Shown: positions 949 through 63,661 of the stretch, piece after piece
How positions within the stretch are numbered: the first letter of the stretch is position 1
Layout of the letters: each line of letters begins with the position of its first letter
From: Sminthopsis crassicaudata
Lineage: Eukaryota
Length of the DNA: 64,000 nucleotides
Direction of reading: 5' to 3'
NCBI RefSeq assembly: GCF_048593235.1
Contig: NC_133617.1
Span: forward strand, 393,766,067 to 393,830,066
Program-made: the position numbers and the translations under genes
The notes under the pieces: generated by a model
The model's input: the letters and a program-made list of their open reading frames with translations, nothing else
Told to the model about the DNA's origin: nothing
Database searches by the model: none

Positions 949-1947
949 CTGGAGGAAAAAAGCACCGCTGTCATAGCTAGAAGTAAAGGCTCAGGGAGAG
1001 GGTCACAAAACTACCAGCAGTGGTCATACACGGCTCTGGAGTAAAGGACTTGGATTCAGATCCTGTCTCTGCCTCCCTCCCTTGTGACGGCTTAAATGGC
1101 TCCCGTTTCCCCCATCTGTGGAGACAGTTAAGTTAGAATACTGGGCCTGGAGTGGAGAAGACTGAATTCAAATTTCTCCTTAAATACTTAAATCCTGTGT
1201 GACCTGGGCAGTTATTTTGTGCCTCAGTTTTTCTCCATTACAAAATGGGATCATCACAACACTCACCTCACAGAGGTGTAAGGATCGAATAGTCAGCAGA
1301 CAAGAAACATTTATTAAATGCCCACTCCAGTGCGGGGTGAGCCAGCTGGGGTGGCTCAGTGGGTGGAGCTCTGCGCCGGAAGTCAGGAAGACCCGGGGTC
1401 AGAAACTGGTGAGCAGTGAGAACTTGGACCAGTCACTCACGTCCTGTTTACCTCAATGCGCTGGAAAAGGGAATGGCAATCCATGCCAGGATCCTTGCCA
1501 AGAAAGCTCCGGACACGGTCCTCGGGCCGGGAGCACAGACTGCTGGGCCCGAGGTCCCACACGAAATAGTGACGCTTACAGCCGCCTTGTGAAGTGGGTG
1601 CTGTTATTATCCCCATTTTACAGAGGAGGAAACTGAGGTTCAGATAATTTGCCCACTAATATAGGAGGCAGGATTCGAAGTCTTCTTGACTCTGTGGCCA
1701 CACTGCCCTGGCAATAATAAAACGAGCTGATGACAGTCATTTTTACCCCTGAGTAAAGTGGCTCCCAGCAATTTTGTATAGACAGTGCTAATATTATCCC
1801 CATTTTGCAGATGGAAACTGAGGCAGCTTAGATTACCTGCCCAGGGACGCACCGGGAGGATTCCGAGTGCCCCAAGGCAAAGGATGCTCCCAGCTCACAG
1901 GGGCCGGGGCCGGGGTGCGGCCCCGGGCGGCCCTCGGTCTCACCCAC

Positions 1948-2038
1948 CTTCCAGCTCCGCTAACACTTCCAACTCGGACGCAAACTGGTCTTCGAACTCA
2001 TCTTGGACGCCGTAGAGTTCCTGCTCGTAGTCCTCCAT
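1948..2038 (-). CDS. CHTF18: CHTF18 (chromosome transmission fidelity factor 18) coding exon 1
   Basis: ATG at 2038 gives MEDYEQELYGVQDEFEDQFASELEVLAELE, closely matching the recalled human CTF18 N-terminus (MEDYEQELCGVEDDFHNQFAAELEVLAELEG). 91 nt, phase 1, donor G|GTGGGT. Head-to-head with RPUSD1 as in human. Confidence 0.95.
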
Positions 2039-2339
2039 CGCGGCTCCAGCAGACTCAGCCTTGGAAACCGCGGGGGCCGCGGCAGCCCAAGGGCGCGGGG
2101 TCCCAGCCTGAACACCGGAGACCGCCCGGAGGCCAAGCTGCCGGTCCGAAAAAACCCGCGCTTCCCCAGTGCGACGCAGTGCGCGCGCACCGCGGCCCTC
2201 GGCGAATTCCGGGAACGTTCCACCGGGCGGCAGCCAACCGGCGTTCCGCGTTCGGCTGGGGGCGTTGCAGGCTCTCCCATTGGCCGGCATGGCTCTCTGT
2301 CTAACCGTGGGGGCGGGGTGGGAAAGCCAATGCCACCAC

Positions 2340-2423
2340 TGAAGGGTACGGAGGTGCAAGCTACGGCGGCCCCGGGAAGCGTGGCGGCGCGGGCTCTCTC
2401 CGCTGCGGAAAGGCTACTCGGGG
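2340..2423 (+). other. RPUSD1: Probable non-coding exon 1 of RPUSD1
   Basis: Consensus donor GGG|GTGAGT at 2424, just downstream of the CCAAT/GC boxes. The first coding exon has an acceptor at 10817/10818, 14 nt before the ATG, so an upstream UTR exon is required. The 5' end is a guess. Confidence 0.55.
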
Positions 2424-3708
2424 GTGAGTCTGAAGCAACGCTCCTAGAGAGGGGAAGGGCCCGGACTGGGGGCTGGGGGAAGCGGGAAGGGCTCTCCTCA
2501 GGCAGCGGGGGGATACTTGCTCCCGGGGAAGCTGCCCCTTCCGGTGCGCCTTCGGGACACTGCGTGCAGCCCGGGAGGCGCGGACCCGGCTGTGCGGGAG
2601 GAGGCGGCCCGCCGCACAGTCCGGGCTCTGGCCCCCGGTGTCCCTCAGCCCCGATGGGCGGGGCTTGGCTGCATTTCTAATGCACTTGGTTGGAGAACGG
2701 GACCAGGATCCGGGCCGTGGGCCGCGCTGCTGGCGGGACTCTCCGGCGGGAGCCCTCTGCCTTTCCCAGGCTGCCCCGCCGGGGCGTGCGGGGCGCCACC
2801 CTCGGGGCGCGGGCGGAGTGCGTGCGGCCCGGGAGCGCTGCTTTCTCACCACTTTGCTAAGTAGGGACCTCCATTTTACTTCCAGACACCCTAACCGAGC
2901 TCACTTCTGAGTCCCGGGGTCTGTCCTGACAAACCGAACCCCAAACCGCCAGCCGCGGGGAGCGGTGTGCGGAGTCCTCCGTCACGCGTCGCCGTCCCCG
3001 GTGCGGGGGGCTGCCCCTCCCACACCCACGGGGTCCGTCACTCTCCGGGCTTGGGAAGTCCTGACATCTGTCTCTGGCTCCCGCGTCGGGTCCGAGCGCT
3101 CCGTCCTTTCTTTGGCTTGTATTTGCTCTCCGCTGTGCGCTTCCTCCCCCGCCTCCCAAAGGAGGCGGTGACCGAGTGCAAACATACAGACACACACAGA
3201 TATCGGTAATCACACACATGTTAACGTGCACCTGGGCTCTCGGCTGCTCATCCTCCGCTCTTCCGAATGCGGACAGTGCTTTCCTTCGGCAGTGTTCTAA
3301 CTCCGCCGTCTCCTCGTTTCCTCCCCACAGCGATGTCCCAGCCGTATACTGGTCACTGTGGTCTGAAACAGTATTGATTACTGCCGCCGACAGACAGCGT
3401 AGTTCCCTACTTTTCTCTTTTGATTAAATCTATGTTAGTGTGACTTTGTCAGAAATCGTGATCCTTCTCCCTGCTTCTTTACACAAACTCTTTGTCCGAT
3501 TTGTGCTTTGTTTGCGTGTATCCCTCCTGCCGCCTCCGCTTTACTTCTGCCCGCTGCTTTTTCCTCCTACCCCCAGAATCTTCTCTTCTCCCCTTTCCTT
3601 TCCCCTTGCCTTCTTGTTTCTATCTGGATTTACAAAACTTTTATTAAGCCTTACAAATATATATATTGTTTCATCTGTGTCCCATTCCCCTTGATCTACA
3701 TACTTGTT

Positions 3709-3877
3709 CCTATTCCCATTAGTTTATACCCTTCTGTATACCTTTATCCTATTCCCATTAATTTACACCCTTCTGTATACCTTTATCCTATTCCCATTAA
3801 TTTACACCCTTCTGTATACCTTTATCCTATTCCCATTAATTTACATCCTTCTGTATACCTTTATCCTATTCCCTTAC
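3709..3877. repeat. 39-bp minisatellite, ~4.3 copies
   Basis: Unit cctattcccattaatttacacccttctgtatacctttat starts at 3709, 3748, 3787 and 3826, with a partial fifth copy. Confidence 0.95.
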
Positions 3878-4051
3878 CCTCTTGTTTATTTCTAAATTTA
3901 GAAGACTTTTACTCCCTTCTGAAAGTATATGTTGTTCTCTCTGTAAGCCAGATCTGATGTGAGTAAAGGTTATCTCTAAAAATCCCTCCCTTATCATCTC
4001 CCCTCTCCCTATTCCCTTACCATTTCTTTCTGAACTTAGAAGACTTTATAC

Positions 4052-47001: not shown

Positions 47002-50000
47002 GTGAGCTGAGGGGCTGGGCAGCCTGACCCGATGAGCCTTCTCTCTCCCCTTTCCTCCTCTTCTCCTGTCCTGTCTTCCTAATCTCTTCTTTCTCTACGT
47101 GAAACATAGAATCTCCTACATGGAAGAGACCTTAAAGATTATCTAGTCCATACTCCATCTACCCCATCTCCACCTTTATTTTTAATCGGTGAGGAAAATT
47201 GAATTCAGGGAAGACAAATCTTGCCCAAAGTCACTTGTGGCAGAGCTGAGAATGGAATCCAGGGCTCGTGACTCTCCAGTTCCGGGCTGCCTTTGTCTCC
47301 CTCTATCCCCCAATTTTCTATCGACTTCCTTGAAGTGAAGGAGGCTCTGAGGAGAGGGAATTAGCATAGGATAAATTCAGCCAGTTGTGATGACCCCAAG
47401 GGGTCCCCAGAACATACCTTTGCCTGTTTGTTTTGAGGGTATCTCCCTTTAGCCCCGGTGTCCACCCTTCCTCCATTCCTCCTGAGAGCAACATGTGTAG
47501 CTCCTTCCTTGTCTTCACCCCTGCTGTACAGGGCTGTCCTGGGCTGCAGGGAACAACCCCACCATGGGGAACAGTTCTATCCTGGGGATTATCAGAACAG
47601 GGACTACCACCAAAGGGACCAACGCCACTACAGAGACCACCGTGGGGAACAATGCCATCACAGAGAACAATGGCACCCCGGCCAGCAACTCCATTCTGGG
47701 GAACAGTGCTACCACGGGGAACAACAGCACATTGGACTACAAAATCACCTTAGAGACCAAACATGTCTTGGGGAACAACGCTACCATGGGGAACAACAAT
47801 GCGGTTACAGGGATCAGTGCCATCACAGAGACCAAAATCTCGGGGATCAGCAATATCATGGGGAACAGTACCATCGCAGAGATCCATATCTACCTGGGGA
47901 GCAAAACCCGGGTGACCAACAGTATCACGGAGAGCACTACCGTCGCAGGGACCCTGGGGAACAAGAGCTCAGAGAGCAACGCTTCCATGGGGAACAGTGT
48001 CACCACCGGGAAGCGAACCTTGCAGATCAAGAATATCTTGGGGAATATCACCACCGACAGTCAAGCCCCGGGAAACAGCGATATCTTGGGGAGCCGTTCC
48101 ATCACCGAGACTCAAGCCACGGAGAACAACGGTACCTCGGAGAGCAGTTCCACCACCGCCACTCGAGCCACGCAGATCGCTACCTGGGGGACCAACGCCA
48201 TCACCCCAGAGAACGCTTACGGCACCCAGGAGAGCGTCTCCACGGGGACCAGCACACCCTTGGGGAACAGCACCTTCTTGGGGACCAGCGCCATCACAGA
48301 GAACAAAATCCTGGAGAATACCATCACCGAGAACACTGCCGTGGGGAACAGTTCCACCATAGAGAGCAATGCCATTCTGGAGAGCAGACTTACCACAGAG
48401 AACCTCGACACGGGGAGCAAAATTTCCGAGAACGTCACTCTGGGGAACGGCACCACAAGGAGCCGTGTCTCCATGGGGATCAGCGAAGACACCTTGGGGA
48501 ACAATGCTACCATGCATCAACTCTTGGGGAGCAATGCCACCATGGGGAGCGCCAGCACAGGGAGCAAAACCTTGGCGAGGACTATCAGCCCTTTGGAGGA
48601 AGACACACTGGTGAGTTAGAGCTACGGGGCTGGAGGGAGGGGATGCTATGATCCAAGGCTCTTTCTGAGTCATGTTCCTCCCATGTGCTCTCCTGGCTCT
48701 GAGCTCCTCCAGAAAAATAAAGGCAGCATCCACAGCCACCGACCGTACCACGGCTCTGTCTGGTGGTGAGGGTCACACAAGCAATGCCCTCCAAGGGCTT
48801 AGCAAACCCATGTCCTAGGAGGGAGCGGGGTGGGCCCGGCGCCATGATTTCTATGGCAGCAGGATCTTGCAATCAGGAAACTCCCTAACTACATAAAATA
48901 AGTACACAAATCAAACATTTGCTGATGAGAAATCATGACTTTGTGACCTCCATATTCAGCGATGAGACCCTTCATGGGCTGCAACCTTACAGTTTAAGAA
49001 GCTGGGTAATCTAAAGTTTGGTTCGAGTAGAAATTAAGTGATTTGCCTGGCCCGCACGCCTAGGATGGGTTAGAATAGAACATAAATCCAAGTTTTCCTT
49101 TCTGCAAGGCCAGCTCTGGAATACAGAACACTGCCTCTGAAAAAGGCTGTTACCAGTATTTATCATCCTCATCCTCATCAGAGCTGGAGTCCAGGGTATC
49201 TTGTGGCATGGGGAGGAACAGGCATATCAAGGACTAACATGAACTGAACCAGACTGGTTTGGGCTTGGGGATTTGCTTTTAACACATGGAGGAATTTGAC
49301 TCAAAGGAAAGAACTCTAAACTGGGTTCTGGTGGTACCTTTGCCCTTAATTTTCTGTTTGGAGCTAAAGTTTGCCTCCTTTCTCTGGGATTTGTTCTCAC
49401 TTTCTGTCAGATGAAAGTGATAGACACCTGTTTCCCTCTGGGGATTCCTTCAGAAATGACATAACTGTTGGGAATATGGTCTCTAAATTGTACAGCTCTG
49501 TATATAGATATGTATGAAGAATTATTATTCTAAAGACGTGGCCCATGTCTCTTCCTTCTCCTAGATCCCCCCAAAGCGTAACCCAGAATAGACAAGGAAG
49601 TGGCTTAGGAAAGATGGCAGGATGGTGGGGAGTAAAGCCAAGATTCATCTCATCAGATATTCCTTGTTTCTTTTCTCTCTTAGTGCCGGGATTCTGGGAT
49701 AAACGGTGAGTGTCTAATCTCTCAGATGCACATACTTTCTATTTTCCTTGGGACATTCTGAGTCAAGAATCCTCACTATACTTCCCTTTTTCTCCCCATC
49801 AGAAACAGCACTGTGCCGTGGTGAGCTCAGGTAAGGAGCACATTATTTTGCTTTTTGGGGGGCAAGGCAGTCGCAGGGGTGGGAGGTCACATAGCCAGTA
49901 AGTGTTGAGATTTGATTTAGATCCTCCTAGCTCCAGGGCCAGTGCTCTATCCACTGTGCTACTTAGTTTCTGATCAGGCCAGACCAGGATCTCGGGTGGG

Positions 50001-51812
50001 AGGGAGGCAGTTGAAAGCTATCCAGGGATCCAGGAGTCGGGATCCACGGGCCAGAAACCAAGGCTCTGGGGAACAGAGGGTGGGAATCCTGAAAGTTAGA
50101 AACCAGGGGAGCCAGAGCTCCAGGGGGTAAGGATTTAGGGAGAAAGGGGTAAGAGTGCTGTGGAACTGGGGGCTCTTTGGGTTGGGGGAGTTAAAGAGGA
50201 ATTCAGCACCTTCATTGTTGGGACTCCAGAAGTTATCTCTATGGAAGAAATGTGCTTACATTTATATTTTTCCTAAAAAGCAGTCATTCATTCAATCAAC
50301 AAGCATTTTTTTCTTTTTAAATAATAGCTTTTTATTTTCAAAATATATGCAAAGATAGTTTTCAATATCAATCTTGCAAAACCTTGTTTTCCCAATTCTT
50401 TTCCCTCCTTTCCCCCCATCCCCTCCCCTAGACAACAAGCAATCCAATATATGTTAAACACCAACATTTATTCATTGTTCCCCTCTGGACTTCTCAGTTC
50501 ATATCCTATTTTATAGTGACTTCTTCCTACTCCCCTACCTCCCATTTTTGTGTTCTAAAACCTTCAGACTTAGCTTTTTTATCTCTCCTGCTTGTTCTTC
50601 CACTTAAAGGATGGGCAGAGATAGTGGCCCCTATTCAGGTCAGGTGTTTTGAGGCCACAAAATCTCCCCAACTCTGCCCCCAGCACAGCCTCTGCCCTCA
50701 CTTGTATCCCAGGGACCAGGGAAAAACAAAACTAGGCTGGGATATGTCTCCTCCTTCAGACATCTCTCCCCTTCCCCTGGTCTTTGAGAAATCTTCCTTT
50801 TCTGTCCCTTTCCCACTACAAACCACCTTTGGTCCAAACCCCCCCTACACTCTCTTTGCCTGGAAGGAGAAAGTCTTAGTGCCTCAGTACATCCAGCTAT
50901 TCCTACACCTATTTCTAGCAGAACGCCTTCCAAGCAAGCCCAGTTCTCTTAAACCCTTCACTCCTTCCTCTCTCTGACAAACTTATCCTGGTCCTCACTC
51001 TTTCATCTACTCTTAGCATCCTCAGCACACCAGCAGCAGGAGGTCTGCTGCACTTGGCAAAGGACTTCTAACCCAGCCAGCAAAAAAGGCAAAAAAGCAA
51101 AGACTCTTTTGTAAAGCCTTTGAATGAATGAGTGTGTGTGTGAGTGAGTGATTGAGTGAGTGGAAAAGCATTAAGTAATTACTATGTACAAAGCCCTGTG
51201 CTAAGCTCTGGGTATACAAATAGAAAAGTAAGACTATTCTTGGTCTCAAATAGGGAGGAGGGTTTGGCTCTGAGTTAAATGGAAAGGTTTCATAGTTATT
51301 AAGATGTAATGGAAGAACTTTGCCATTTTTCAGGTATATAGACACAAAACTAAATCTCATAGTCTTTTGCTGTTAACTGTCCCGTGTTTCCTGCTGGGAA
51401 GTCCAGGGATAGCCATAAAGGACATTGAAAGGAGAGGAAATAATAGGTTCCTAATAAGAAAGTAGTGTTTCCTGAGTTCTAAGCATGCTCTGTGGCTTCT
51501 CAAAGGAAGAAGGGAGCAGGTAGGAGAGTATGGATCATATTAAGTTATATACTACACCTATCTACTCTCTCAACAGGGAACCCCGGAAAGGTAAGGAAAG
51601 TAGGGGAAGCAGTATCCTTCAGTCCCTGAAGCCCTGAGTCTCCCAGTGAGTCCCAGGAGATCTTGATTTCCAGTGAAAAGTGTCTGCATTCATTCCAGAC
51701 TTTTAATGATAGTGTTTAGCTTATGGAGAGGGACCAATGGTCAAGTAGAGGCTAGATGAGATGACCATAGAGTGATTCAGTGATTCTCATTCTCTCTGTC
51801 TCTCTGTCTCTC

Positions 51813-51887
<75 letters not shown>

Positions 51888-54800
51888 GTATCTCAGCTCT
51901 GGAGAAAGTGCCGAAAACATCAGCCTAAGGGATTTTATCTGCCAAAAGGTGAGTAGGAGGTCCTGTTGGACACCGATTCCCAGCCTTTCTCTTCTGCCAT
52001 GTCCTCTCTTCTGGCTGCTTGGAGACTAGAAATCTCATCTCCAAAGTCCTATTTCTGCTCTCCAAAGGCCCTAGCTCCCTATACCTCTGACCTTGAAAAT
52101 CCCACACAGTCTCCTGGCTTTGGGGGAATGTGTTTAGATGGAGCCCGTTTCCTTTTCCATTTGTCCCAATGGTTCTGGGAATTCTCTCCTAGTTTCTTGC
52201 TTTAATTTCTCCTCAAAAGCCCTGGGATGAGGTGGCCTTGAGCAAATTATAAACTTTCTGGGCCTCCATTTCTTTATCTCTAAGATTCATGGGTTGGACT
52301 AAGTAATTAGATGATGAAGTGGATAGAGCACTGATAGAGCTCTGGGTCTGGAGTCAGGAAGACTTGAATTCCAACCCAGCCTCAAATACTCATTAGCAGT
52401 GCCACCTTGCACAAACCATTTTGTTTCTATTTGCCTCAGTTTTTTTCAGCTGTAAAATGGGGATAATAGTAGTACTGATTGCCCAGAGTTGTTGTGAGGA
52501 CTTAATGAGAGTATTTGTAAAGCATTTAGGCTAGTGCCTGGCACATAATAGGTGCTATATAAATCCTGGCTGCTATTATTATTTTTCTATGCATATAATT
52601 ATTATTTTATTATATGTATAATATTATTTGTGAATAGTAATATTATTATTATTCTATGAAACAGCTTTCTGGAGAGAAAACACACAGGCTCTGCACTTAG
52701 CTCTGCAATCTCCTATCTGTGATTTTAGCTACAGTTTCTTCATCTGTAAGATGAAGGGGTTAATCTCAGTGGTCTCTAACAATACTCTCAAGTCTGGATC
52801 TTTAACTTTATGGTCTCTAAGGTGTTTTATTTTAAAAAATGATTCTCTTATTTTTAAAATACACATTTCTTTATGAATCAGATATTTTACTTTTCTAGAA
52901 ATCTTTTGAATTAGGAAGTTATGAGAAGTAGAGGACTGTGGGGCAGGGGTCAGAACATCAAGGGTAGGGGGTCCTGTGGAGGAAGAGAAGAGCCTTGCAG
53001 GGCATAGGGAAGGTGGCAAAGTCTTGAAAACAAGCTTTGACAAGTGGTTTTGTGAAGCAGCAAACCAGGGGATGGGTATATGGGAGGGTTGTGGGTAGAA
53101 GTGAAGGGGGGGTTAGTTCTGTAGCCTGCTTGAAATTGCCCTCTGGATTCTGATTCCCAGAGAGCCCAAGGGTCACCGCTGAACAGAGAAGAACTAGAAG
53201 TGAGACTGAGCAGGGCCAAGTGTAAGGATCCAGGGATAATACAGACCCTGGCCCTAATCTTTAGCTATGCCAACCTCAAAGAACTCCAAGACATTCTTGT
53301 CCAGGTACCTGTGGGAGACCTCCTGAGGGACGGGGTGGGAGACGGAAGGATGGGCTCCGGGCAGGGGACCGGGCAATGTCTGGCGTTTCACAAATCCTAG
53401 TGACCCAGGATTTTTAACACATCTTCTCTAGCTCTCAGGCTGAGTGATGTGGTGAGGGGAGGGAGCTGCACCCAGGAAATGGCCTGGCATTTAGACTGTC
53501 TGCTACCTTTCCTTGGGTCTCTTGCCTCTGTTTTCCTTTGGAAGTCCCTGGCTGGGGGGGGGAGGCCCTGGGCTGCCCACAGACAAGTGGATAACATGTT
53601 TTGGGGAAAATACTTGTGTTTGTTTCAGCTGAATGGCTCTCTCTGCCACGCTGCCACTAGGAAAGCTTTGTGGACCCTTATGCTACAGGGACGACTGGAT
53701 TTTAAGGATACCCCATCCCTGCGCTGGTGGTTCCAGGATTTCCTCCAGCCCTTTCTGACATCACTGTCCAGAGATGAACGATGCTTCCCCCTCAATACCC
53801 TGAACTGCAAACAATACCAGGCTTTGTAGGTTTGCTAGACACTGGATTCTTTTTCCATCTTCCCAGAACCCAGATGGGGAGGCTAATCAAAATCAACAAC
53901 TTTATTTCCCCCAACATAGAAGGTGTTTGGGCTTTATTTTCTCAAAATACAGAACCGATCGTTCTGGGTTGTGGCTGGGAGGTGGGAGGGAGAAATAGAG
54001 AAGGGGAGATGGCTCTGTACTTAAGGAAGCCCTTCGTCTATGGCCCTTGGTGCCCCATAGTTCTTTGCTCCTTACCCTTAGGGAGCCCCCTGGGAGTATG
54101 AGGGAAGATAGTATTCTTGTCCTCGGGGAGCCTTGGCCTGGGCAGGTTGAAATATAACCCCCATCCTCGGAGAGTTAAATCTCAGTAGAAGACCCTTCTC
54201 CCATCCTTGGGAAATATTTGGTCTGAGATCTGCATTCTCTACCCCTTCCCCTACCAGGAATCTTTCATTTTAAGGGAAAGTATGGTCCCTGCTCATTCAA
54301 AAGGCCACATGGCTCCCATAAGTCTGAAGGAGAACCACATCCCTGTTTTTGTTACTGAAGGAGATAACATCTCCCCCTCCTGGGGGAGCCTGCAGTGTGA
54401 GAGCAAGACATGATCCTCCATCAGGGAGCCTCCAGTTGTAGGTAGAGATATGGCCTCTGCCCTCAGAGAGCCCCTTCCAGAGGGGACTTGTTCTTGGGGT
54501 GCTCCCAAGCTGCCCCTTATCCTTAGGGAGCCCCCTGAGGGAGCCCTTAGCATGAGAGACAGACATCATTTTTGCCCTTTCTCCTTTCTGATGGGGAGAT
54601 GTAGCTCTTGCTTCTAAGGAGCCCCCAAACTGAGGGAGGAGACAGAGTCCTCATGTCTGAAGGGGAGATAATGGCCTCCACTCCCAGGGAACTTGCCTGA
54701 GGAAGAGAGAAATGGCTCTGGCCCTCAGGGAACCCCCTTCCTAAGAGAAAAATAAATCAAATCTGTCTAAACACTCACAGTGAGGCCCGGTATCACCAGA

Positions 54801-55841
54801 AGCAGAACCTGGAGACAGACTTACATTACTGGGCACAGAAACTGTTTTCCCAATCAGGTTCCCATCCTAAAGCCTCATGTGTCCTGTCTCATTCTCACAC
54901 ACATTTCCATTAAAGGCTCGAATCTGTCTCTTCGCTAAGGGTAGAAAAGCAAGGAATTAGTGGTTTACTTAGAACCTGCCAGCCCTGTCCCATCAGTCCA
55001 GTTAAATCCTGCACATGCCCTGTCTCTCTGTGGCTGCTGTTTCAATTCTCACAAAAGTCTCCAACTATCTTGTGAAAATACCTTGCTCACTGCAAGATTC
55101 CATACGGATGTGAGTAGAAGAGCATGAGAGGATTAATACAAGTATATGGGAGAATTCACAAGGAAAAGACCTGAAGCTGTTATTGGACCACAAGCTGCAT
55201 ACAAATCAATAGTGTCATTGATTTTTAGGGAAAAAAAAAGCAAATGTGTTCTTAGATTACATTAATAGACGCGTAGACGCGTCTTGTCTAGAAAAAGAGA
55301 AGTTTTCACCTCCCATCCCATCGCCTGTGAGAACACAACTGGAATATTGCTTCCAGTTCTGGACACCACATTTTAGGAAGAATATTAATAAACTGAAGTG
55401 TGTCCAAAAGAGTGATCCGGGGAGCCATAACTACAACAGACATGGATCATTTGAAGAAATTGGATATTTCAGAGTCTGGGTGGAGGGGGGTCAGTCATAT
55501 GGAAGAGGTATCTTTAGCCTTGCTCTACTTGGCTCCTTGTTAACAATTAGCAATAAGGTAGCAAACTCTCTGTCATGGGAGGACGTCAAGCAAGCCCTAG
55601 ATAACCAGTCTCTGAGGGAGTTATCCTGAGGATTTCTTTCTGTGTTGAGACTGAACTAGGTAAGCCCTTCTATGGAGAGAGATTCCACCCAGCCTAGATC
55701 AGTCTAGATTACAGCATCAGATTACTGATACTGTTTGTTTTCCCCTTTATCACCAGTCTAGTCTCCTGCTTATATCCCATCTCCTACAGGTACCTCTCTT
55801 ACTCTAACCTGGAGCAGGGGAAGATGTCTTCCCCCCCATAT

Positions 55842-55889
<48 letters not shown>

Positions 55890-58800
55890 GCAGGTATGCT
55901 ATCATTGTTCTCTCTGATGGGGACGATGAAGCAGGGGTCATCTAAGGATCTTGTTGGGGGGATGTTGGGGTCTTGGACCATGTGAGTATCTGCTTTTCTA
56001 AAATATAGGCAGGTATGCTATCATTGTTCTCTCTGATGGGGATGATGAAGCAGGGGTCATCTAAGGATCTTGTTGGGGGGATGTTGGGGTCTTGGACCAT
56101 GTGAGTATCTGCTTTTCTAAAAAGCCCCTGGGGTTGTGTCCCAGTGTTCAAGTGCTGGACATGGAATTTGAGGGGATGAGCCAAGAGACCCAAGAAGCTG
56201 TCTACACAACTTTCCAGCGGCCTGTCCTGACACGCCTGAACACCAGTGGTGAGGATCCTTCACCCACTTTCTCCTCCTCTTGGCTTTATAGTGGAGGAAA
56301 AAATGAGTTCGGAAGGCATAGGAGAGTGGAAAGTGGTAGTAGTGAAGGGAGGTGAGTGGGTGGGATGGCAAAAGGGGATACAAAGCAGAAGGGGAAATAT
56401 ATAGAACTTGGGAGCTGATGGAAAGAGAATAGAAAAAAGGAATGAAAAATGAACCTAAGAGGGGAAAAAAAAGTTGGAAATGGAAACTAGAGAAGGAAAT
56501 CAAAGTAGCCTGGTAGAAAGGGACTGAGAAAATCTAGATGGCTGCTTATCCGTTCTTTCCCCTTCTGCCCCCTTCATTTCACCTCCCATCTCTGCCCTAA
56601 TGCTGGTTGCCCACCCCACATGTCCTACCATGGATGTATCCCATCTGAAACAGGGAGGGGAAGGACTACTGGTGATGTGCCATGTCTCTGCCAGGGCTAA
56701 GCTGCGTTCCAGAGGCCAACAGCAGCACAGCCTGGTTGGATGCTAACCTGGGCCGATTTAGCCAATATGCCACCTATGAGGACCTGGTTACTTTCAACAC
56801 TGAGTTTGATGGGGTAAGTCCCAGTATGAGGAATGAACAGAGTAATCGAGCAATTTTGGATTCCAGAGGTACCTAAGAGTTCCTAGTGGTCAGCCATGTT
56901 CATCCCAAGACTTAAAGGGCAATTCTGGTCCATGGAAAAGGATGAAGATCTCCAATAGAGTCATCCCATAATGGTCCTCTGTTACCAAATCCAGAGCTGT
57001 TTTTGTTCTATCCCACTGCTGGGAGTGAGATGGGGAACTAGGATGAATGTGGAGGTAGTTAGTCACTGGCCACATTTAGAATCTCCTGAGTTCCAGAATC
57101 AGTTTCTAGGGTTAGAGAGAATTCTGAGTTAGTCTGGAGCTGGGTTGGTTTAGAACCAATTTAAGAAGTTAGTTAAATATATTGAATTACATGCCATCTA
57201 GGAGAGGGGGAGGGGAGAAAGGGGGGAAATTGGAACACAAGGATTTCAAGGGTCAGTGTTAAAAAATTATGCTTGCATATGTTTTGAAAATAAAAAAACC
57301 AACAGAAAATTAAATAAATGAAAAGAAGTTAAAATGAGGTGATTTAGGCCAATTTCAATTAGAGATAGCCATCTGCATCCAGAAAGATGACAATAGGAAC
57401 TGAATGTGGATCACAAAATATTTTCACCTTTTTTGTTGTTTGCTTTTTTTTCCTCATTTTTTCCCTTTTGATCTGCTTTTCCTTGGGCAGCATTATAAAT
57501 GTGGAAATATGTTTAGAAGAATTGCACATGTTTAACTATATTAGATTACTTGCTGTTTAGGGGAGGGAGAAAAAATTGGAACACAAGCTTTTCCAAAGGT
57601 GAATGTTGAACATTATATTTCCATGTATTTTGAAAATAAAAAATTATTATTGAAAAAAAATAGGAAACTTTTGATGGTAAAAAAAAAGTTAAGATCCAGG
57701 GGCTGGTCTCAGTCTGTGGCTTGCATTAAGACTCTGTCTTAGGCCAGGGCTGGAGCTAGAGTTGAAGGTGGCCCCCGTTAGAAGTAGTTTCCATTTAGAG
57801 CTAAGGCCTGAGGTGTTCTGGGACTGGGGTCTACACATAAAAATAGGAGTCAGTTTAGGGCCAGATTAGAGGTCTTAAGATCACAGAGCTAGAAAAGGAT
57901 AGGTTCTCAAAGGCCAGATAGTCCAGCCCTCTCATTTTATAGAACAGGAATGATTAACTCAAAGTCACACCAAAGGCAGAACCAGACATTGGACCCGGTT
58001 CTCTGATTACAGAGGCACTGTGCTTTTCACCTTTCTTCCTGTGTCCAGATCAGATACTGTTTCAGAGTCTAGATTTTGGCCTGGGATGGGGTTGCATCTC
58101 TAGGTTAGCTGCGGCCAGAGTTAGAGGGCGGTCTGTGTCCTAAATTGTATCAGCCTTTGCCTGGGCTTGGATCTCAAAATGAGAGGCAGCCTGGATAACG
58201 GAGAGAGGTTAAATCAGCTGCTCCCCAAGTCTGTGCATAACTAGAGATAGGGGTCAGTCCCGAGTCTAGGAGTCATTTTGGTACCCAGTTTTCCCCAGTG
58301 GAAAAATAACTGATGAGTTAAGGGGATTCCCCTTGACCTTGACTGAGACAATTAATCTCTTCCCCAGAGTTTTGGCTGCTGGCTATTGCTTGACGCCACC
58401 TAGAGGCCTCTTTCCTAAGAGTCAGAGCTCCGTCAGTTACTGCTCTCCCATCCCAGAGGATGCTCCAAGTTGGCTTAGTCTAACCCCTTTATCTTCCTTC
58501 CCCCTTGGCTCGTCCCCAGCTCCAAGTCCTGGACCAGCTCACTTTGAGGCAGCTGGCCCAGCTTGCAGCCGCCAGAGGTGCCTTAAATGAGACCATGGTG
58601 GAGGGATTTCCAAACAACTTCCCTCGTCAGGTAAGGACCGCTGTGGCCTCCATCACTCACAGCTGACCTCAGGCCCCAGCTGGACCCTCCAGAATCTTCC
58701 CACTAATGCTAGGAAGGGCTGAAAGGTGCAGAAGGGATGGAGGGCAGGGCAAGTGAAATCCAGACACCTGTCTGTGGTCAGCCTGGCTGGCGGAAATGGG

Positions 58801-61800
58801 CAAAGTTTGGGGGAGATGGCTTCACTTCATCTTCCAGCACTAAATTTGTGATCCTACGGTGATGTTGGGGTGCTTGAAATGCTCGGTTCTCTCATCTGTA
58901 AAATGGAGGATTTGGACTAAAAAGGCCTCTAGGTCTATGATACTATGGCTGATTCCTTTGGATTATTATTTATTAATTTGATAATAATTTTATTATATTA
59001 TTCTATTTATTATATTATATTGTTAATAATTTAATAATTAACATTATTCTTTTTCTATGGGTTTTTTCTAAGCAACAGACTTCTCTGGGATAGAATTTAG
59101 AGGTCATCTAATTCATATTCCTCATTCTACAAATTAAAAAAAAAATTGAATGCTAAAGTGCCAGCCCTGGAGTCATCTTCCTGAGCTAAAATTACCTGTG
59201 TGATTCTGGGCAAATCACTTAATTCTGTCTTCTGCCTCAGTTTCCTCATCTGTAAAATGAGTTGGAGAAGGAAATGGCAAACCACTCCAACAAAACCCCA
59301 AGGAGGTCACAAATAGTGGAATATAATTGAAATGACTGAACAACCAAAGGCCAACTGCATCATTCTATAGATGAAGAAAATAGGTGAAGGGACTTGCCCA
59401 GCCATGATTTGAAGTCAGGTCACCTGTGTCCAAAGCCAGAACAGTTCTCACTATGCTGTAGAGGTTTGCGTGAGGAATGTAGGATGAATGCAAAGGTTCA
59501 CACGTCAGCCTGATAACTCTCTTGATTCTTGATGAAATTCCTAGAGCAATAGCTCCTCTGTCACTAATCAAAGGGACCTTTCCCCTGCCTCCATGCCATT
59601 TCTTGACTTTTTCAAGCTTTATTGATAGGAACAATGTGGTAAAGTGAAAAGAAAACACTCTCTGAAGTCAGAGAATCCCTATTTAGATCCTGCTTCTGTC
59701 ATCTTTGTAACTTTGCTCAAGCGGCTCTCTGCATCTCCTTTCCCTCTCTTATGAAGAGGAGGTGGGCTTGAATTTTACCTCAGACACTTACTATATGACC
59801 CTGCACAAGTTACTTAACCCTGATTACTTTCCCCAAAAAAGTGACACACCAATATACACGGGACCCTCTTTCCTTTTAGGGGCCCTCTGCCAGCTCAGTG
59901 CCATGAATTCCACCTGCCAACTTTCATTTCCAAAGCCTGAGCTAGATCCACATGCCATGCCTTAAACCCTGTACCCTGAATATGAGGAGGGCTGGAAGAA
60001 TCACCTCAAAAGTTAACAGTTTTGGTCACAACACATAGATAGCTACAAGTGCACACAATTCCTTCCAATCACAAGGGAGAGGGATTTTCTATTCACATCT
60101 CTCACTCTTCTCTGGAACCTACCTTTTCACCTTGGGTTTCTTAGTAACTTTCCTGAGTCAAGATTCCCCCCATCTATTTGGGTGCTTTCCCAAGATCCCC
60201 CCTTGTAGAAAGGGAAACACATAGGCGGGAGAGAGACTCATCATCAACCCATAGCCACCCTCAAGGGCTCATTTATCACCTAGCAGCTGGTATTTGGCAA
60301 ATGGGCCCCTTCGGGAGCATTGGGCAGGGAATTCAGTTCCCTGAGCTCCTGCCCTGCTCTGTAAGCAATTCACATCCAGGACTAGGGGACTAGAGTCTCC
60401 TTATCTCCATGCTTTTCCACAACCCCACTTCTCATCCCTGACAGCCCCGCTCCATTGTCAAGAACACTGGTTCTCAAAGTGTAGGCCAGAGAACCCTGAG
60501 AGTCTTTGACACCTTTTAAGAGGGTCTACACATTCAAAGTTAATTTTTATTTCTAATATGGTAGATAGCTATAACTATAACCCACATACACAAAAATTCT
60601 TTGGACAGATCCTCAATAATTTTCAATTGTATATAAAGATACTGATAACAAAAGTTTGAGAACCACTGGTCTAGAGGTAGAGGTCCTTCTTTTTTTTTAA
60701 CCTGTGGAAACTGAGGCCCACTGGGGAGAAGATGTTTTCCCACGGTCAGTCACACAATGGACCAATATGAAAGAGAGAAATAAAATCCAGGTATTTTGGT
60801 CCCAAATATTTCTCTAGTAAGGAGAGATGTCAACTTTTCTGAATCTGGAAGTGCTAGATAATGTTAGTTATTGTTCTTACATTCAATTTATTTCTCCTTT
60901 TTTCGTTTTGTTGTTTTTTATGTAGCATCTCCTACCCTTTTGTTTCAGAAATGTTAGTTATACTTTGTAAATTAATTAATTAATTTTTTAAAAAAATAAA
61001 GTGCTTCCTTCTCTATTTTTCCTATTAAAAAAAAAGACGTGTTAGTCACTGTGACCACAAATGATTGTCCAACTCCATGGAGTTGGAGGCCTGGAACACT
61101 CAGTAGTTACAATATCCCATTATGTACCCTCAAGTCTCTATTTATGTTGGTTGGATACTAATTATATGTGTCTAACCCTATGTTAGGGAGGGCTTCCTGG
61201 AGGTGAGCCCCCTTAAAGGCACTGGGCATCAGAGCTTGAAATGACAGTGACTAACACGTCTTTTTTTTAATAGGAAAAATAGAGAAGGAAGCACTATATT
61301 TTTTTTAATTAATTAATTAATTAATTTACAAAGTATAAGTAACATTTCTGAAACAAAAGGGTAGGAGATGCTACATAAAAAACAACAAAACGAAAAAAGG
61401 AGAAATAAATTGAATGTAAGAACAATAACTAACATTATCTAGCACTTCCAGATTCAGAAAAGTACTTTGCAAATACTGTTCCCCTTGAGCTTAAACAACC
61501 TTGTTATCATCATCTCCATTTCAGAAGTGGGGAAAGTGAGGCAGAGATTAAGTGACTTGCCCAGAGTCACTTGGCTAGTAAGTGTCTGATGCTTCCTGAG
61601 AGTAGAGGCTGTGTTTCCTCTTCTTCCTTCTTCACCATGACATAGATTCAACCCAGGGAGCTGGGGATCTACAGAATGATTTGGGGACTAAGTTGAGCTG
61701 AATTGATTCAGGAAGATTAAAGAGAAAGGAATTCAGCTCTTGAACTTCCTACTCTACATACATATACATACATATATATAAAATTGTGTAAGATAATTGG

Positions 61801-63661
61801 ACTATAAATTTAGGAAAGGTAAGATATATATGAGGGGCAGCTAGGTACAGAGCTGAAGTCAAAAAGTCTCATCTTCCCAAGTTCAAATTCAGCCTCAGAT
61901 ACTGTGTGATCCTGGGCAAATCACTTAACCTTGTCTGCCTCAGTTTCCTCATCTGTAAAATGAGTCAGTGAAGGAAATGGCAAACTATTCTGCTATCTCT
62001 GCTAAGAAAACCCCAAAAGAGATCACAAAGAGTCAGACATGACTGAACAACAACTGGCAAAAGTGATCGTGGGGGTCACCTAGTCCCATTCCCTCATTCT
62101 ACAGATGGGGAAATTGAGACCCAGTGCGGGAAAGCAATATCATGGCACACACATAGTAAGTGTCATAATTAAATCCACACACTCTGACTTCAAATTCAGT
62201 GCTCTTCCCATTATATTATGTTGCGTCTCTGAGGCATAGTTTGAGGACTTTGGTTCCTTGGGATACTTTTGGATATTGTCTAAAATCTCATCCTTTTTCC
62301 ATTCTATTTTTCCAATAAACTCCAGAGAGAGAACTGTGGAGACTGAATGTGGATCAAAGCATAGTATTTTCATCTTTTTTTGGTTTTGTTTTGTTTTTTT
62401 CATGTTTTTCCTCTTGATCTGATTTTTTTTTTGCGTAGCATGATAAAAATAGAAATATGTTTAGAAGAACTGAAGAACATGTTAACCTAAAAGAAAAGTT
62501 CATCCTTATAGCCTGAGATGGGGGCCTGAAAGTCTAGAGCTAGTCATTCTCCAGGCAGGTGGATAGCTTCCGGAGATAGGGTGGGGAGGGGTCAGGGGCA
62601 TCCTCTGCCACCATATAGAGTAGGATGCCCAGACCCATTCTGTCTATCTCCCTCCTTCTTTGCAGGAGTCATTATTGAACAGGACCAAGGAGGTCATTGA
62701 GATTAGCCTTTCTTTCCTGACCAATGGCAGCGTTTCTGTGACCACGTGGACAGATGTACGGACGTTATTCTATTTCTATTTCCTTCAAAGTAAACTTCTC
62801 CCTACAGAGAACACCGGCTGCCCAGCCTTTCAAGCCATGTGAGTGAGCCATGCATCTCTGGCAGGGTGGGGGTCAGGGGAGGGGGCCCAGTGGCAGGGAT
62901 GGGACAGAGCTTCTCTGGCACACAGTTCCAGCTTCTTCTAGTTGGGAAGAAACGAACAAACTGGTGCTAATCACAGGACAATGATCAAGATGACCACGGA
63001 AGCTTAAAATTTAGGGGGCCCGAAACCATGCTTGTAGGGATCAGTTGAAGGAAGTAGATGTGTTTGGTTAGCTTGGACAAAAGATGAATAAGTGGAAGTT
63101 GCAAGAAGGTGGATTTTAGCACAGGAATTTAAGCTCCTTGAAAATGGATTGCTTTGATTTTCTTTGTACCTTTACATCTAGCAGACAGCAGGAGTTAATA
63201 AACACTTGGTTGGTCAAAATGTAAAGAGAAGCTTCCTAAAAAACAAGAACTGTTCAATAATTACAGAATTGCCTGTCTAGAGTTGTAAAAGACTTTAGAA
63301 GTCACCTAATCCAACACCTTCATTTTACGGATGAGGAAGTCAAGGCTCAGAGAACCGAGGTCATCCAGCAATATCAGAGACAAGATTTGAATTTTAGTTC
63401 TCTAGTTCTAATGCTCTGATCACCACCTCAGACAGTGGATGAGCTTAGGAGGTAGTGAGTGCCACATCTTGTGAAGTGTTCAAGTAAAGGTTAGAGGACC
63501 AGTTGTCAGACACTGTAAAGAGGATTGCTTTTTCAGCTTTAGATCGGACTAGATTGATTTTCTTTGTTCTGCACCTCTCACTTTTAGTGTGAGCAATGGT
63601 CCAAGTATCCTGAAGGGTCGGGAAGAAGAGGTCTATCATCACATCTACTCCTACCTGACTG
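46953..63661 (+). CDS. MSLNL: Large secreted mesothelin-like protein gene (MSLNL position), 5' part: 12 coding exons, 2152 nt / 717 aa, open at the window edge
   Basis: Exons 46953-47001, 47532-48610, 49684-49705, 49803-49830, 51897-51948, 53161-53304, 53629-53825, 56145-56248, 56695-56813, 58520-58630, 62666-62838 and 63588-63661 all have AG/GT borders and join in phase without a stop. The symbol rests on synteny (human order CHTF18, RPUSD1, MSLNL, with MSLNL on the RPUSD1 strand) and on recalled resemblance to repeats of long fish mesothelin-like proteins. The diagnostic mesothelin domain is not in the window. Confidence 0.6.
47501..48651 (+). CDS. Overlapping frame B of the same exon: His/Gln/Arg/Gly/Glu-rich hexapeptide repeat protein
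   Basis: Stop-free from 47458 to TGA 48649-48651. About 34 [GR][ED]Q motifs, ~57 His, ~12 Cys. No in-frame ATG near its start, but the signal exon joins it in phase via the weaker acceptor gtgtag| at 47500. Confidence 0.5.
47532..48610 (+). CDS. MSLNL-like 1079-nt low-complexity exon, frame A (Asn/Thr/Ser/Gly-rich, mucin-like)
   Basis: Strong acceptor ctccttccttgtcttcacccctgctgtacag|. Completes the signal peptide (…CLGLSWAAGNNPT). Open to donor CTG|GTGAGT, phase 0. 17 N-X-S/T sequons counted by hand. Confidence 0.75.
48716..48721 (+). terminator. Candidate intronic poly(A) signal downstream of the large exon
   Basis: AATAAA 65 nt after the frame-B stop and ~100 nt after the frame-A read-through stop. 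A GT-rich stretch (tctgtctggtggtg) follows ~35 nt downstream. Confidence 0.4.
49684..49705 (+). CDS. MSLNL-like 22-nt microexon
   Basis: tccttgtttcttttctctcttag|TGCCGGGATTCTGGGATAAACG|gtgagt. Encodes CRDSGIN + G, phase 0 to 1. Confidence 0.75.
49803..49830 (+). CDS. MSLNL-like 28-nt microexon
   Basis: ttctccccatcag|…CTCAG|gtaagg. (E)TALCRGEL + AG, phase 1 to 2. Only this donor keeps the next exon open. Confidence 0.75.
51897..51948 (+). CDS. MSLNL-like 52-nt exon
   Basis: Follows a (CT)n tract and tctcag|. (S)SGESAENISLRDFICQK, donor AAG|GTGAGT, phase 2 to 0. Confidence 0.75.
53161..53304 (+). CDS. MSLNL-like 144-nt exon
   Basis: tgattcccag|RAQGSPLNREELEVRLSRAKCKDPGIIQTLALIFSYANLKELQDILVQ|gtacct. 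Phase 0 to 0, weak donor. Confidence 0.7.
53629..53825 (+). CDS. MSLNL-like exon, repeat 1 part A
   Basis: tgtttcag|LNGSLCHAATRKALW…WWFQDFLQPFLTSL…LNCKQYQA + TT|gtaggt. 197 nt, phase 0 to 2. Confidence 0.85.
55100..55690 (+). mobile_element. CR1/L3 LINE fragment; similar fragments at ~42330-42950 and ~45000-45600
   Basis: ORF 55246-55629 contains VRTQLEYCFQFWTPHFRKNINKLKCVQK, matching the CR1 RT C-terminal motif (LVRPHLEYCVQFW.P). Confidence 0.8.
55886..56123. repeat. 119-bp tandem duplication following a (GATA)n microsatellite
   Basis: ataggcaggtatgct…cttttctaaaa at 55886 and 56005, with one substitution (gacgatg/gatgatg). Confidence 0.92.
56145..56248 (+). CDS. MSLNL-like exon, repeat 1 part B
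   Basis: gtcccag|(F)VQVLDMEFEGMSQETQEAVYTTFQRPVLTRLNTS + G|gtgagg. 104 nt, phase 2 to 1. Confidence 0.85.
56695..56813 (+). CDS. MSLNL-like exon, repeat 1 part C
   Basis: ctctgccag|(G)LSCVPEANSSTAWLDANLGRFSQYATYEDLVTFNTEFDG|gtaagt. 119 nt, phase 1 to 0. Confidence 0.88.
58520..58630 (+). CDS. MSLNL-like exon, repeat 1 part D
   Basis: cgtccccag|LQVLDQLTLRQLAQLAAARGALNETMVEGFPNNFPRQ|gtaagg. 111 nt, phase 0 to 0. Confidence 0.85.
60465..60668. mobile_element. hAT-Charlie (MER5-like) MITE
   Basis: TIRs CACTGGTTCTCAAAGT / AGTTTGAGAACCACTG. Degenerate NTCTAGAN-type TSD gtcaagaa/gtctagag. Confidence 0.75.
60833..61463. repeat. Long inverted repeat: 220-bp arms (60833-61052, 61244-61463) with a 191-bp spacer
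   Basis: The arms are reverse complements, differing only in homopolymer/(AATT)n lengths and 1-2 substitutions. Confidence 0.95.
62666..62838 (+). CDS. MSLNL-like exon, repeat 2 part A
   Basis: ccttctttgcag|ESLLNRTKEVIE…ENTGCPAFQA + AT|gtgagt. 173 nt, phase 0 to 2, with the same CxxxQA end and phase as 53629-53825. Confidence 0.85.
63588..63661 (+). CDS. MSLNL-like exon, repeat 2 part B
   Basis: ctcacttttag|(I)VSNGPSILKGREEEVYHHIYSYLT + G|gtaagg. 74 nt, phase 2 to 1. EEEVY…LT parallels QEAVY…LT. Confidence 0.8.

Follow-up and report, generated by a model that had tools for sequence, protein, structure and literature searches.

The MSLNL locus of the dunnart

A 64,000-nucleotide (nt) stretch of the genome of the dunnart Sminthopsis crassicaudata was analysed (NCBI RefSeq assembly GCF_048593235.1, contig NC_133617.1, positions 393,766,067 to 393,830,066, forward strand), hereafter called the window. 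Its positions 49684-63661 had been described, in an initial annotation made from the sequence alone, as part of a long mesothelin-like gene. We take them, with a probability of about 85%, to contain exons 3 to 12 of the 32 coding exons of a long MSLNL form (~1,650 residues), whose repeated exon cassettes are ancestral and whose front part was lost in eutherians.

The long-form gene is on the plus strand, starts at 46953 and extends past the right end of the window. It sits downstream of CHTF18, which starts on the minus strand at ~2.0-2.4 kb of the window, and of RPUSD1, whose exons are on the plus strand at 10.8-18.5 kb. Further downstream, the gene table has a minus-strand gene with a Mesothelin domain (locus L006). 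The order CHTF18-RPUSD1-MSLNL-MSLN was also found at all four eutherian loci compared (elephant, Mastomys, fox and Tamandua), and because of this match the locus was identified as the MSLNL position, with RPUSD1 upstream on the same strand and MSLN downstream on the opposite strand. Sequence beyond the window was taken from GCA_048593235.1, CM109181.1 (locus L005), which overlaps the last 8,840 nt of the window with 0 mismatches.

The dunnart exons were searched one by one, and every full-length comparison was done with database proteins. The tammar wallaby model P0016 was colinear with every in-window exon, the last of which ends at its residue 715 (tblastn). The opossum protein F6QGD8 ("Mesothelin like", 1,719 residues) and a bilby model were likewise colinear. 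The wallaby, bilby and opossum models (1,634-1,719 residues) thus link the in-window exons to the Pfam Mesothelin domain PF06060. This domain was detected at residues 1008-1579 of P0016 (E 1.6e-86), joined to all in-window exons, and at residues 485-1053 of the 1,122-residue dunnart model P0028 (E 1.2e-85), joined to exons B to B' (described below). The expected rightward continuation of the exons into a Mesothelin domain was therefore seen in both proteins.

Exon structure

All exons described here are on the plus strand, and phases are given as start-end. The first two coding exons lie upstream of 49684-63661. Exon e1 (46953-47001, phase 0-1) has an ATG, a putative signal peptide and a GTGAGC donor, and was found by tblastn with wallaby P0016 and Antechinus P0014. 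Exon e2 (47532-48610, phase 1-0) is a 359-codon, Asn/Thr/Ser-rich, mucin-like repeat exon; over ~375 residues, it is 52% identical to its wallaby and 84% to its Antechinus counterpart. It is followed by a 22-nt microexon, e3 (49684-49705, phase 0-1), which matches a Cys-containing linker in the Antechinus, wallaby and opossum models, a 28-nt microexon, e4 (49803-49830, phase 1-2), and the 52-nt exon e5 (51897-51948, phase 2-0), found by tblastn with P0014 and P0027. A (CT)n/(GA)n microsatellite at 51780-51890 ends ~12 nt before the e5 acceptor and makes up most of its polypyrimidine tract.

The remaining in-window exons belong to three four-exon cassettes, named a, b and c. Cassette a consists of e6 (53161-53304, 144 nt, phase 0-0; 69-80% identical to wallaby and Antechinus), A (53629-53825, phase 0-2), B (56145-56248, phase 2-1) and C (56695-56813, phase 1-0), the last with 40-41% identity to Anolis and snake. 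Exon D (58520-58630, phase 0-0) is the remaining first exon of cassette b. A' (62666-62838, phase 0-2) and B' (63588-63661, phase 2-1) are the second and third exons of cassette c. Its fourth exon, C', lies beyond the window (window-equivalent 64561-64697, 137 nt, phase 1-0). From exon B onward, the borders were fixed by the exact splice map of P0028 on locus L005.

Direct reading of the splice sites showed that all 12 in-window exons are open and flanked by an AG acceptor and a GT donor, without a stop codon arising from any split codon. The six exons named in the initial annotation (A, B, C, D, A' and B') were present with AG/GT borders and the phases given there, as were its quoted peptides, split codons included (ending in QYQAF|V in A and in AFQAI|V in A'). 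Its start at 49684 is the first base of microexon e3, and its 340-residue segment corresponds to the sum of e3 to B' (1,024 nt, ~341 residues).

An inverted repeat with arms of ~200 nt (60833-61034 and 61261-61463; 96-98% complementary, 226 nt apart) was found in the intron between D and A'. It is either a hairpin-forming sequence or a small foldback transposon. Apart from microsatellites and dispersed repeats, a tblastx comparison of the region against itself returned a 119-bp tandem duplication only.

The four-exon cassette

The cassette consists of four exons with phases 0-0, 0-2, 2-1 and 1-0. It begins and ends in phase 0; therefore whole cassettes, or any four consecutive exons, can be gained or lost in frame. 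BLASTP gave no alignment between exons A and A'. Unit profiles were built from 8-11 orthologues (marsupial, sauropsid and reedfish). Residues 455-631 and 632-801 (wallaby numbering) aligned with an E value of 2e-11 in hhalign, with the QA(I/V)|V intron in the same column of both units and the next two introns within a few residues. When the 0-0 exon was placed first (405-595 against 596-765), the units aligned in register over 152 columns, with 97.9% probability and an E value of 3e-13. For each unit's profile, the other unit was the sole match in the whole protein. Exon e6 against D alone was not significant (E 0.067). The recurring module proposed in the initial annotation is thus real, but each unit starts one exon earlier than proposed, with the 0-0 exon, so that the corrected units are e6-A-B-C and D-A'-B'-C'. 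Dunnart exons 20-23 (numbering of the 1,122-residue model), within the Mesothelin domain, have the same four phases. They showed no detectable homology to the cassettes (E 0.06-0.14) and were not counted.

The register was settled by the exon maps of snake and Carassius, which show the same four-phase sets. In the snake gene, a signal-peptide exon precedes three cassettes, whose phases are identical, and these are followed by a dunnart-like exon series from a 125-nt 0-2 exon onward. Among the 54 exons of the Carassius gene are five clean cassettes and a sixth set in which the phases agree but the exon lengths are unusual. A 22-nt 0-1 microexon followed by a 28-nt 1-2 microexon, like e3 and e4, and a 125-nt exon are present as well.

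Local alignment scores assigned the marsupial exons to cassette types. Unit 1 scored 301 with snake a and 150-193 with the a-type units of carp, and is of type a. A'-B'-C' reached 228 with its snake and 143 with its carp counterpart of type c, to which it belongs. For D, the scores were 49 (snake) and 43 (carp) with b1, but 20 and 23, respectively, with c1, so that D is the first exon of a type-b cassette. Exons b2-b4 are present in squamates, turtles and teleosts, and in none of four marsupials. Marsupials therefore keep cassette a, b1 and c2-c4, and miss b2, b3, b4 and c1. These sequence comparisons are most simply read as the loss of four consecutive exons (b2, b3, b4 and c1) in the marsupial line, starting from an ancestral a-b-c array; the phase pattern allows such a loss without a frameshift. 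On this reading, the three diverged cassettes were already present in the first bony vertebrates. Squamates retain a-b-c, and the teleost expansions are of type a, with up to 11 copies. The duplication noticed in the initial annotation stands as a recurrence, but it is not marsupial-specific: the cassette was triplicated, and this predates the split between ray-finned fish and tetrapods.

Long forms in fish and sauropsids

A phmmer search with exon A alone against 1.84 billion representative proteins gave 13 matches: two marsupial, seven named teleost, one nameless MetaClust and three unnamed ENA proteins. The three ENA proteins look spurious and had no BLASTP similarity to the family. The marsupial matches were an Antechinus "mucin-22-like" protein (97% identity) and a tammar wallaby "uncharacterized protein" (72%; 1,622-1,649 residues). 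Those from teleosts included sea bass mslnb (4,675 residues), Carassius mslna-like (2,186 residues) and a piranha protein of 4,003 residues, in which 11 stretches matched exon A. The likeness to repeats in very long teleost proteins that the initial annotation named was thereby borne out; in teleost giants of up to 4,675 residues, the unit is repeated up to 11 times.

Colinearity with the marsupial protein began at about residue 400 in squamate models and at 480 in the turtle model and extended to about 1600, with 35-40% identity. A word-based homologue search with residues 400-1000 returned marsupials and one reedfish only, and sauropsids were found only with a seed from the Mesothelin part.

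The teleost mslna/mslnb giants (2,186-4,675 residues) and the squamate long forms share the cassette phases, the linker microexons and the downstream exon series with dunnart. They differ in the copy number of the unit: up to 11 of type a in fish, three in snake, and one and three-quarters in marsupials. Snake has a long, putatively low-complexity exon near the C-terminus, whereas the mucin-like exon of dunnart is at the N-terminus. The snake exon in question (exon 31, L008 67110-68736) has 1,627 nt, versus 259 nt in dunnart, and an N-terminal mucin-like exon is missing from snake. If snake exon 31 is mucin-like, the glycodomain is at opposite protein ends in the two animals.

Truncation in eutherians

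Eutherian proteins were compared in batch alignments, in which human was represented by two protein entries. Eutherian DNA was compared at four non-human loci, one per superorder (elephant, Mastomys, fox and Tamandua), each with the complete RPUSD1-MSLNL interval and the whole gene. In ~117 eutherian MSLNL models from all four superorders, the alignment to the wallaby protein began at residue 1033 or later, except in Lemur, Sorex and Elephantulus, where weak similarity extends over a short distance to 1015-1017. In most full-length eutherian models it started at their own residue ~27-36. This agrees with the apparent absence of the modules from the eutherian MSLNL N-terminus given in the initial annotation. 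N-terminal extras are present in several longer models (Lemur with 1,251 residues, the human 1,051-residue entry, rhino, buffalo, Tamandua and gundi), and these matched neither the wallaby protein nor a profile hidden Markov model (HMM) of the extension.

In the four eutherian intervals and the first introns, tblastn with marsupial and sauropsid proteins gave no match upstream of the residue-1033 exon. The search for decayed exons suggested in the initial annotation thus found none, intact or decayed, at these loci. An HMM of residues 400-1032 gave no match on the six-frame translations of the four loci either. As a control, the same HMM recovered all seven window exons in its range (E 8e-11 to 0.08). 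By these sequence comparisons, the eutherian loss comprises all 18 coding exons upstream of the residue-1033 exon, or ~1,030 residues.

The exons that eutherians retain equal dunnart exons 12-25 (numbering of the 1,122-residue model) almost base for base in length and have the same phases. Dunnart exons 13-23 have 121, 86, 127, 191, 91, 136, 188, 156, 128, 131 and 95 nt, and their counterparts in fox have 124, 86, 127, 191, 91, 142, 188, 156, 128, 131 and 95 nt. Eutherian MSLNL (MPFL; ~650-790 residues), at the orthologous locus between RPUSD1 and MSLN, has 52-61% identity with dunnart over the Mesothelin domain. Unlike the dunnart form, it lacks the mucin-like stretch, the linker microexons, the cassettes and the stereocilin-like region, and its signal-peptide exon is fused to the equivalent of exon 12.

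A homologue of the eutherian signal peptide forms the N-terminus of a short brushtail possum model (P0019). In dunnart, the homologous stretch lies directly 5' of exon 12 of the 1,122-residue model, in frame and contiguous with it (L005 24186-24271, window-equivalent ~79346-79431), and is 83% identical to the possum short form. After the upstream stop it contains no in-frame ATG, the closest ATG being in the +1 frame; the short isoform may have been lost in dunnart. Because it is homologous in possum and dunnart, the eutherian first coding exon predates the marsupial-eutherian split, and it probably served as an alternative internal first exon. Eutherians would then express what corresponds to this internal first exon, with the signal-peptide coding sequence abutting the residue-1033 exon.

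The claim that marsupials keep an ancestral long form that was shortened in eutherians is supported by these results. None of the three findings that would speak against it was made, namely a lack of fish and sauropsid homologues, an end of the downstream exons before any Mesothelin domain, or intact orthologous exons in eutherian MSLNL. Squamate, turtle, reedfish and teleost homologues were all found.

The spacer between RPUSD1 and MSLNL measures ~28 kb in dunnart (18551-46953), with a run of N at 41275-41554, and 3.5-6.2 kb in the four eutherians. A GC-rich block (1900-3400; 58% GC in bin 2001-4000) lies at the head-to-head starts of CHTF18 and RPUSD1, of which it is likely the shared bidirectional promoter.

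Protein layout, fold and relatives

The predicted dunnart protein would begin with a signal peptide and the 359-residue N-glycan-rich mucin-like stretch, followed by a short Cys-containing linker from the 22-, 28- and 52-nt exons. Next would come two alpha-helical units of ~165-190 residues, each from a four-exon cassette, ~270 further helical residues weakly resembling stereocilin, and the Mesothelin domain. The C-terminal tail resembles a glycosylphosphatidylinositol (GPI)-anchor signal.

An AlphaFold2 model of wallaby residues 400-1032, based on a 14-sequence alignment, was all-helical (mean predicted local distance difference test score 70.7, predicted template modelling score 0.47), with residues 594-673 poorly modelled. 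The top Foldseek matches in the PDB were karyopherins and designed helical repeats, with E values of 1.6e-3 or worse, none below 1e-3. Among 48,161 representative chains searched, three mesothelin entries ranked within the top 11; they matched residues 707-1032 with Z scores of 6.1-6.5. The cassette region was matched by generic alpha-solenoids, with Z scores of up to 7.2. Against PDB sequences, a profile built from the extension sequence gave chance matches only. The Pfam Stereocilin family PF21058 had no match on wallaby 400-1032, and its matches on three of 14 homologous extension segments were weak (best E 0.006) and fell short of the gathering score. In blue tit, a 983-residue paralogue matched both Pfam Stereocilin (E 1.7e-9) and Mesothelin. 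By transitive alignment, its Stereocilin match corresponds to about residues 810-960, outside the window.

Stereocilin, otoancorin and mesothelin were previously related to each other, with a predicted armadillo (ARM)-type superhelix, and stereocilin and otoancorin are GPI-anchored inner-ear proteins linked to deafness (PMC2628672). Both are long, secreted or GPI-linked helical proteins that have a long N-terminal helical region before the mesothelin-like part, as predicted for the dunnart form. STRC and OTOA are paralogues of MSLNL, not orthologues, and they were likened to it by description and Pfam.

MSLN, the paralogue next to MSLNL on the opposite strand, also contains PF06060, and its solved structures were among the top matches to wallaby 707-1032. 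The mesothelin precursor, ~630 residues in human, is without cassettes, unlike dunnart MSLNL. The dunnart MSLN model, to the right of the window (L006 66350-74506, minus strand), has at least 1,103 residues and a Mesothelin domain; eutherian MSLN may also be a shortened form. Mesothelin binds the mucin MUC16.

Alternative readings

Instead of a eutherian loss, the extension could have been a marsupial gain, through a lineage-specific duplication or the capture of an upstream gene. Its absence in eutherians fits such a gain, as does the word-based search that returned marsupials and one reedfish only. However, squamate, turtle, reedfish and teleost proteins carry the region colinearly, exon lengths and phases are common to dunnart, snake and carp, and units a and c each have their own orthologues in snake and carp. 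We regard a marsupial gain as refuted by this long-form colinearity, the shared exon maps and the unit orthology. Hardly more credible is a second possibility, in which the in-window exons are decaying relics and the functional product of dunnart is a short form of the eutherian type. The possum short form with its eutherian-type signal peptide speaks for it. Against it, all 12 in-window exons are open with canonical splice sites, e6 to B' are 69-92% identical to wallaby versus 52% for the mucin exon, the Cys and Trp positions are invariant from fish to amniotes, and the dunnart counterpart of the short-form signal peptide has no in-frame ATG.

The points that weigh against a single long dunnart gene concern mainly the junction between exons A and B. 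The NCBI annotation of the dunnart assembly has two genes here. The upstream 535-residue product reads through the exon A donor to a TAG at 53827-53829, and the 1,122-residue "mesothelin-like" model starts at an internal Met in exon B (56161). Antechinus models end at the same point and are split likewise. Poly(A) hexamers (AATAAA/ATTAAA) occur in the A-B intron at 54751, 54909 and 55387. The 119-bp tandem duplication (copies at 55886-56003 and 56005-56122, ~97% identical) ends 22 nt upstream of the exon B acceptor, where it could affect branch-point use and might bear on the break in the annotation. Exon structure, orthology, homology of the cassettes, their absence in eutherians and the all-helical prediction are shown, whereas it is inferred that e1 to the last exon form one dunnart transcript, with 53825|56145 as a predicted splice. 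The gene could be two, a secreted "mucin-22-like" protein of 535 residues and an independent "mesothelin-like" one, or, in a milder version, a long form plus a short isoform made by polyadenylation in the A-B intron. We consider this improbable overall, although it is the most serious of the three alternatives. The split falls between the second and third exons of a cassette whose four exons are together in snake, carp, wallaby, bilby and opossum, the models of which are continuous across the equivalent of A-B. Both splice sites of the junction, the donor of exon A and the acceptor of exon B, are canonical, and their phases fit. The 1,122-residue model starts with a non-hydrophobic peptide and has no signal peptide, yet it has a GPI-like tail, which points to an N-terminal truncation. 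Because it cuts cassette a, leaves intact splice sites unused and gives the downstream model no signal peptide, we take the split for an artefact or for one isoform at most. The separate upstream gene considered in the initial annotation thus agrees with the NCBI gene models, but not with the conserved cassette. Two strictly separate genes are unlikely; a short secreted isoform may be made in addition through the poly(A) hexamers.

Other points on the same side concern the nature of the protein. Pfam gave no match on single in-window exon translations, and these exons lie outside Pfam coverage. The putative signal peptide (a hydrophobic N-terminus in exon 1) and the putative GPI signal (small residues followed by a hydrophobic tail of ~20 residues at the C-terminus) were both judged by eye. 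For helical repeats, the structural matches of the predicted model are below a decisive level. A tether function would follow by analogy with stereocilin, otoancorin and mesothelin. Despite these points, a single long form of MSLNL remains the reading that we prefer.

Implications for the MSLNL family

In the literature searched on MSLNL, mslna/mslnb and the mesothelin family, we found no description of a long MSLNL, of the cassette or of the eutherian truncation; the long forms themselves are already in RefSeq and UniProt under uninformative names. What is gained is modest in this respect, as the models pre-exist and the understanding of mechanism is unchanged. It is a well-supported case of gene-structure evolution in a known family, and it corrects a split annotation in two dasyurid genomes. 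To our knowledge, MSLNL has no known function. Among its relatives are the deafness genes STRC and OTOA and the major cancer antigen MSLN.

According to the comparisons above, placental MSLNL is only the last 14 of 32 or more ancestral coding exons. The ancestral protein would have looked like a stereocilin-sized tether with a variable number of cassettes, and with a mucin-like tip in marsupials, which offers a hypothesis for the original role of the family. Such a GPI-anchored alpha-solenoid tether would link the apical cell surface to a glycoprotein gel or mucus, with the cassettes setting its length and the mucin-like tip as the distal end. Tentatively, and with more doubt than confidence, the cassette may be seen as an evolutionary length dial for this tether (0 in eutherians, ~2 in marsupials, 3 in squamates and 11 in piranha), and eutherian MSLNL as the product of an old internal promoter made the sole one by a stem deletion of 18 exons. 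If so, the eutherian deletion could mark an altered way of retaining the mucus layer in sensory or other epithelia. Sensory epithelia come into question as mouse Mslnl shows high specificity to olfactory receptor neurons (PMC4295871). Dunnart or opossum are the mammals in which to study the long form, and, if the length-dial idea is true, marsupials would be the only mammals in which a long tether can be studied.

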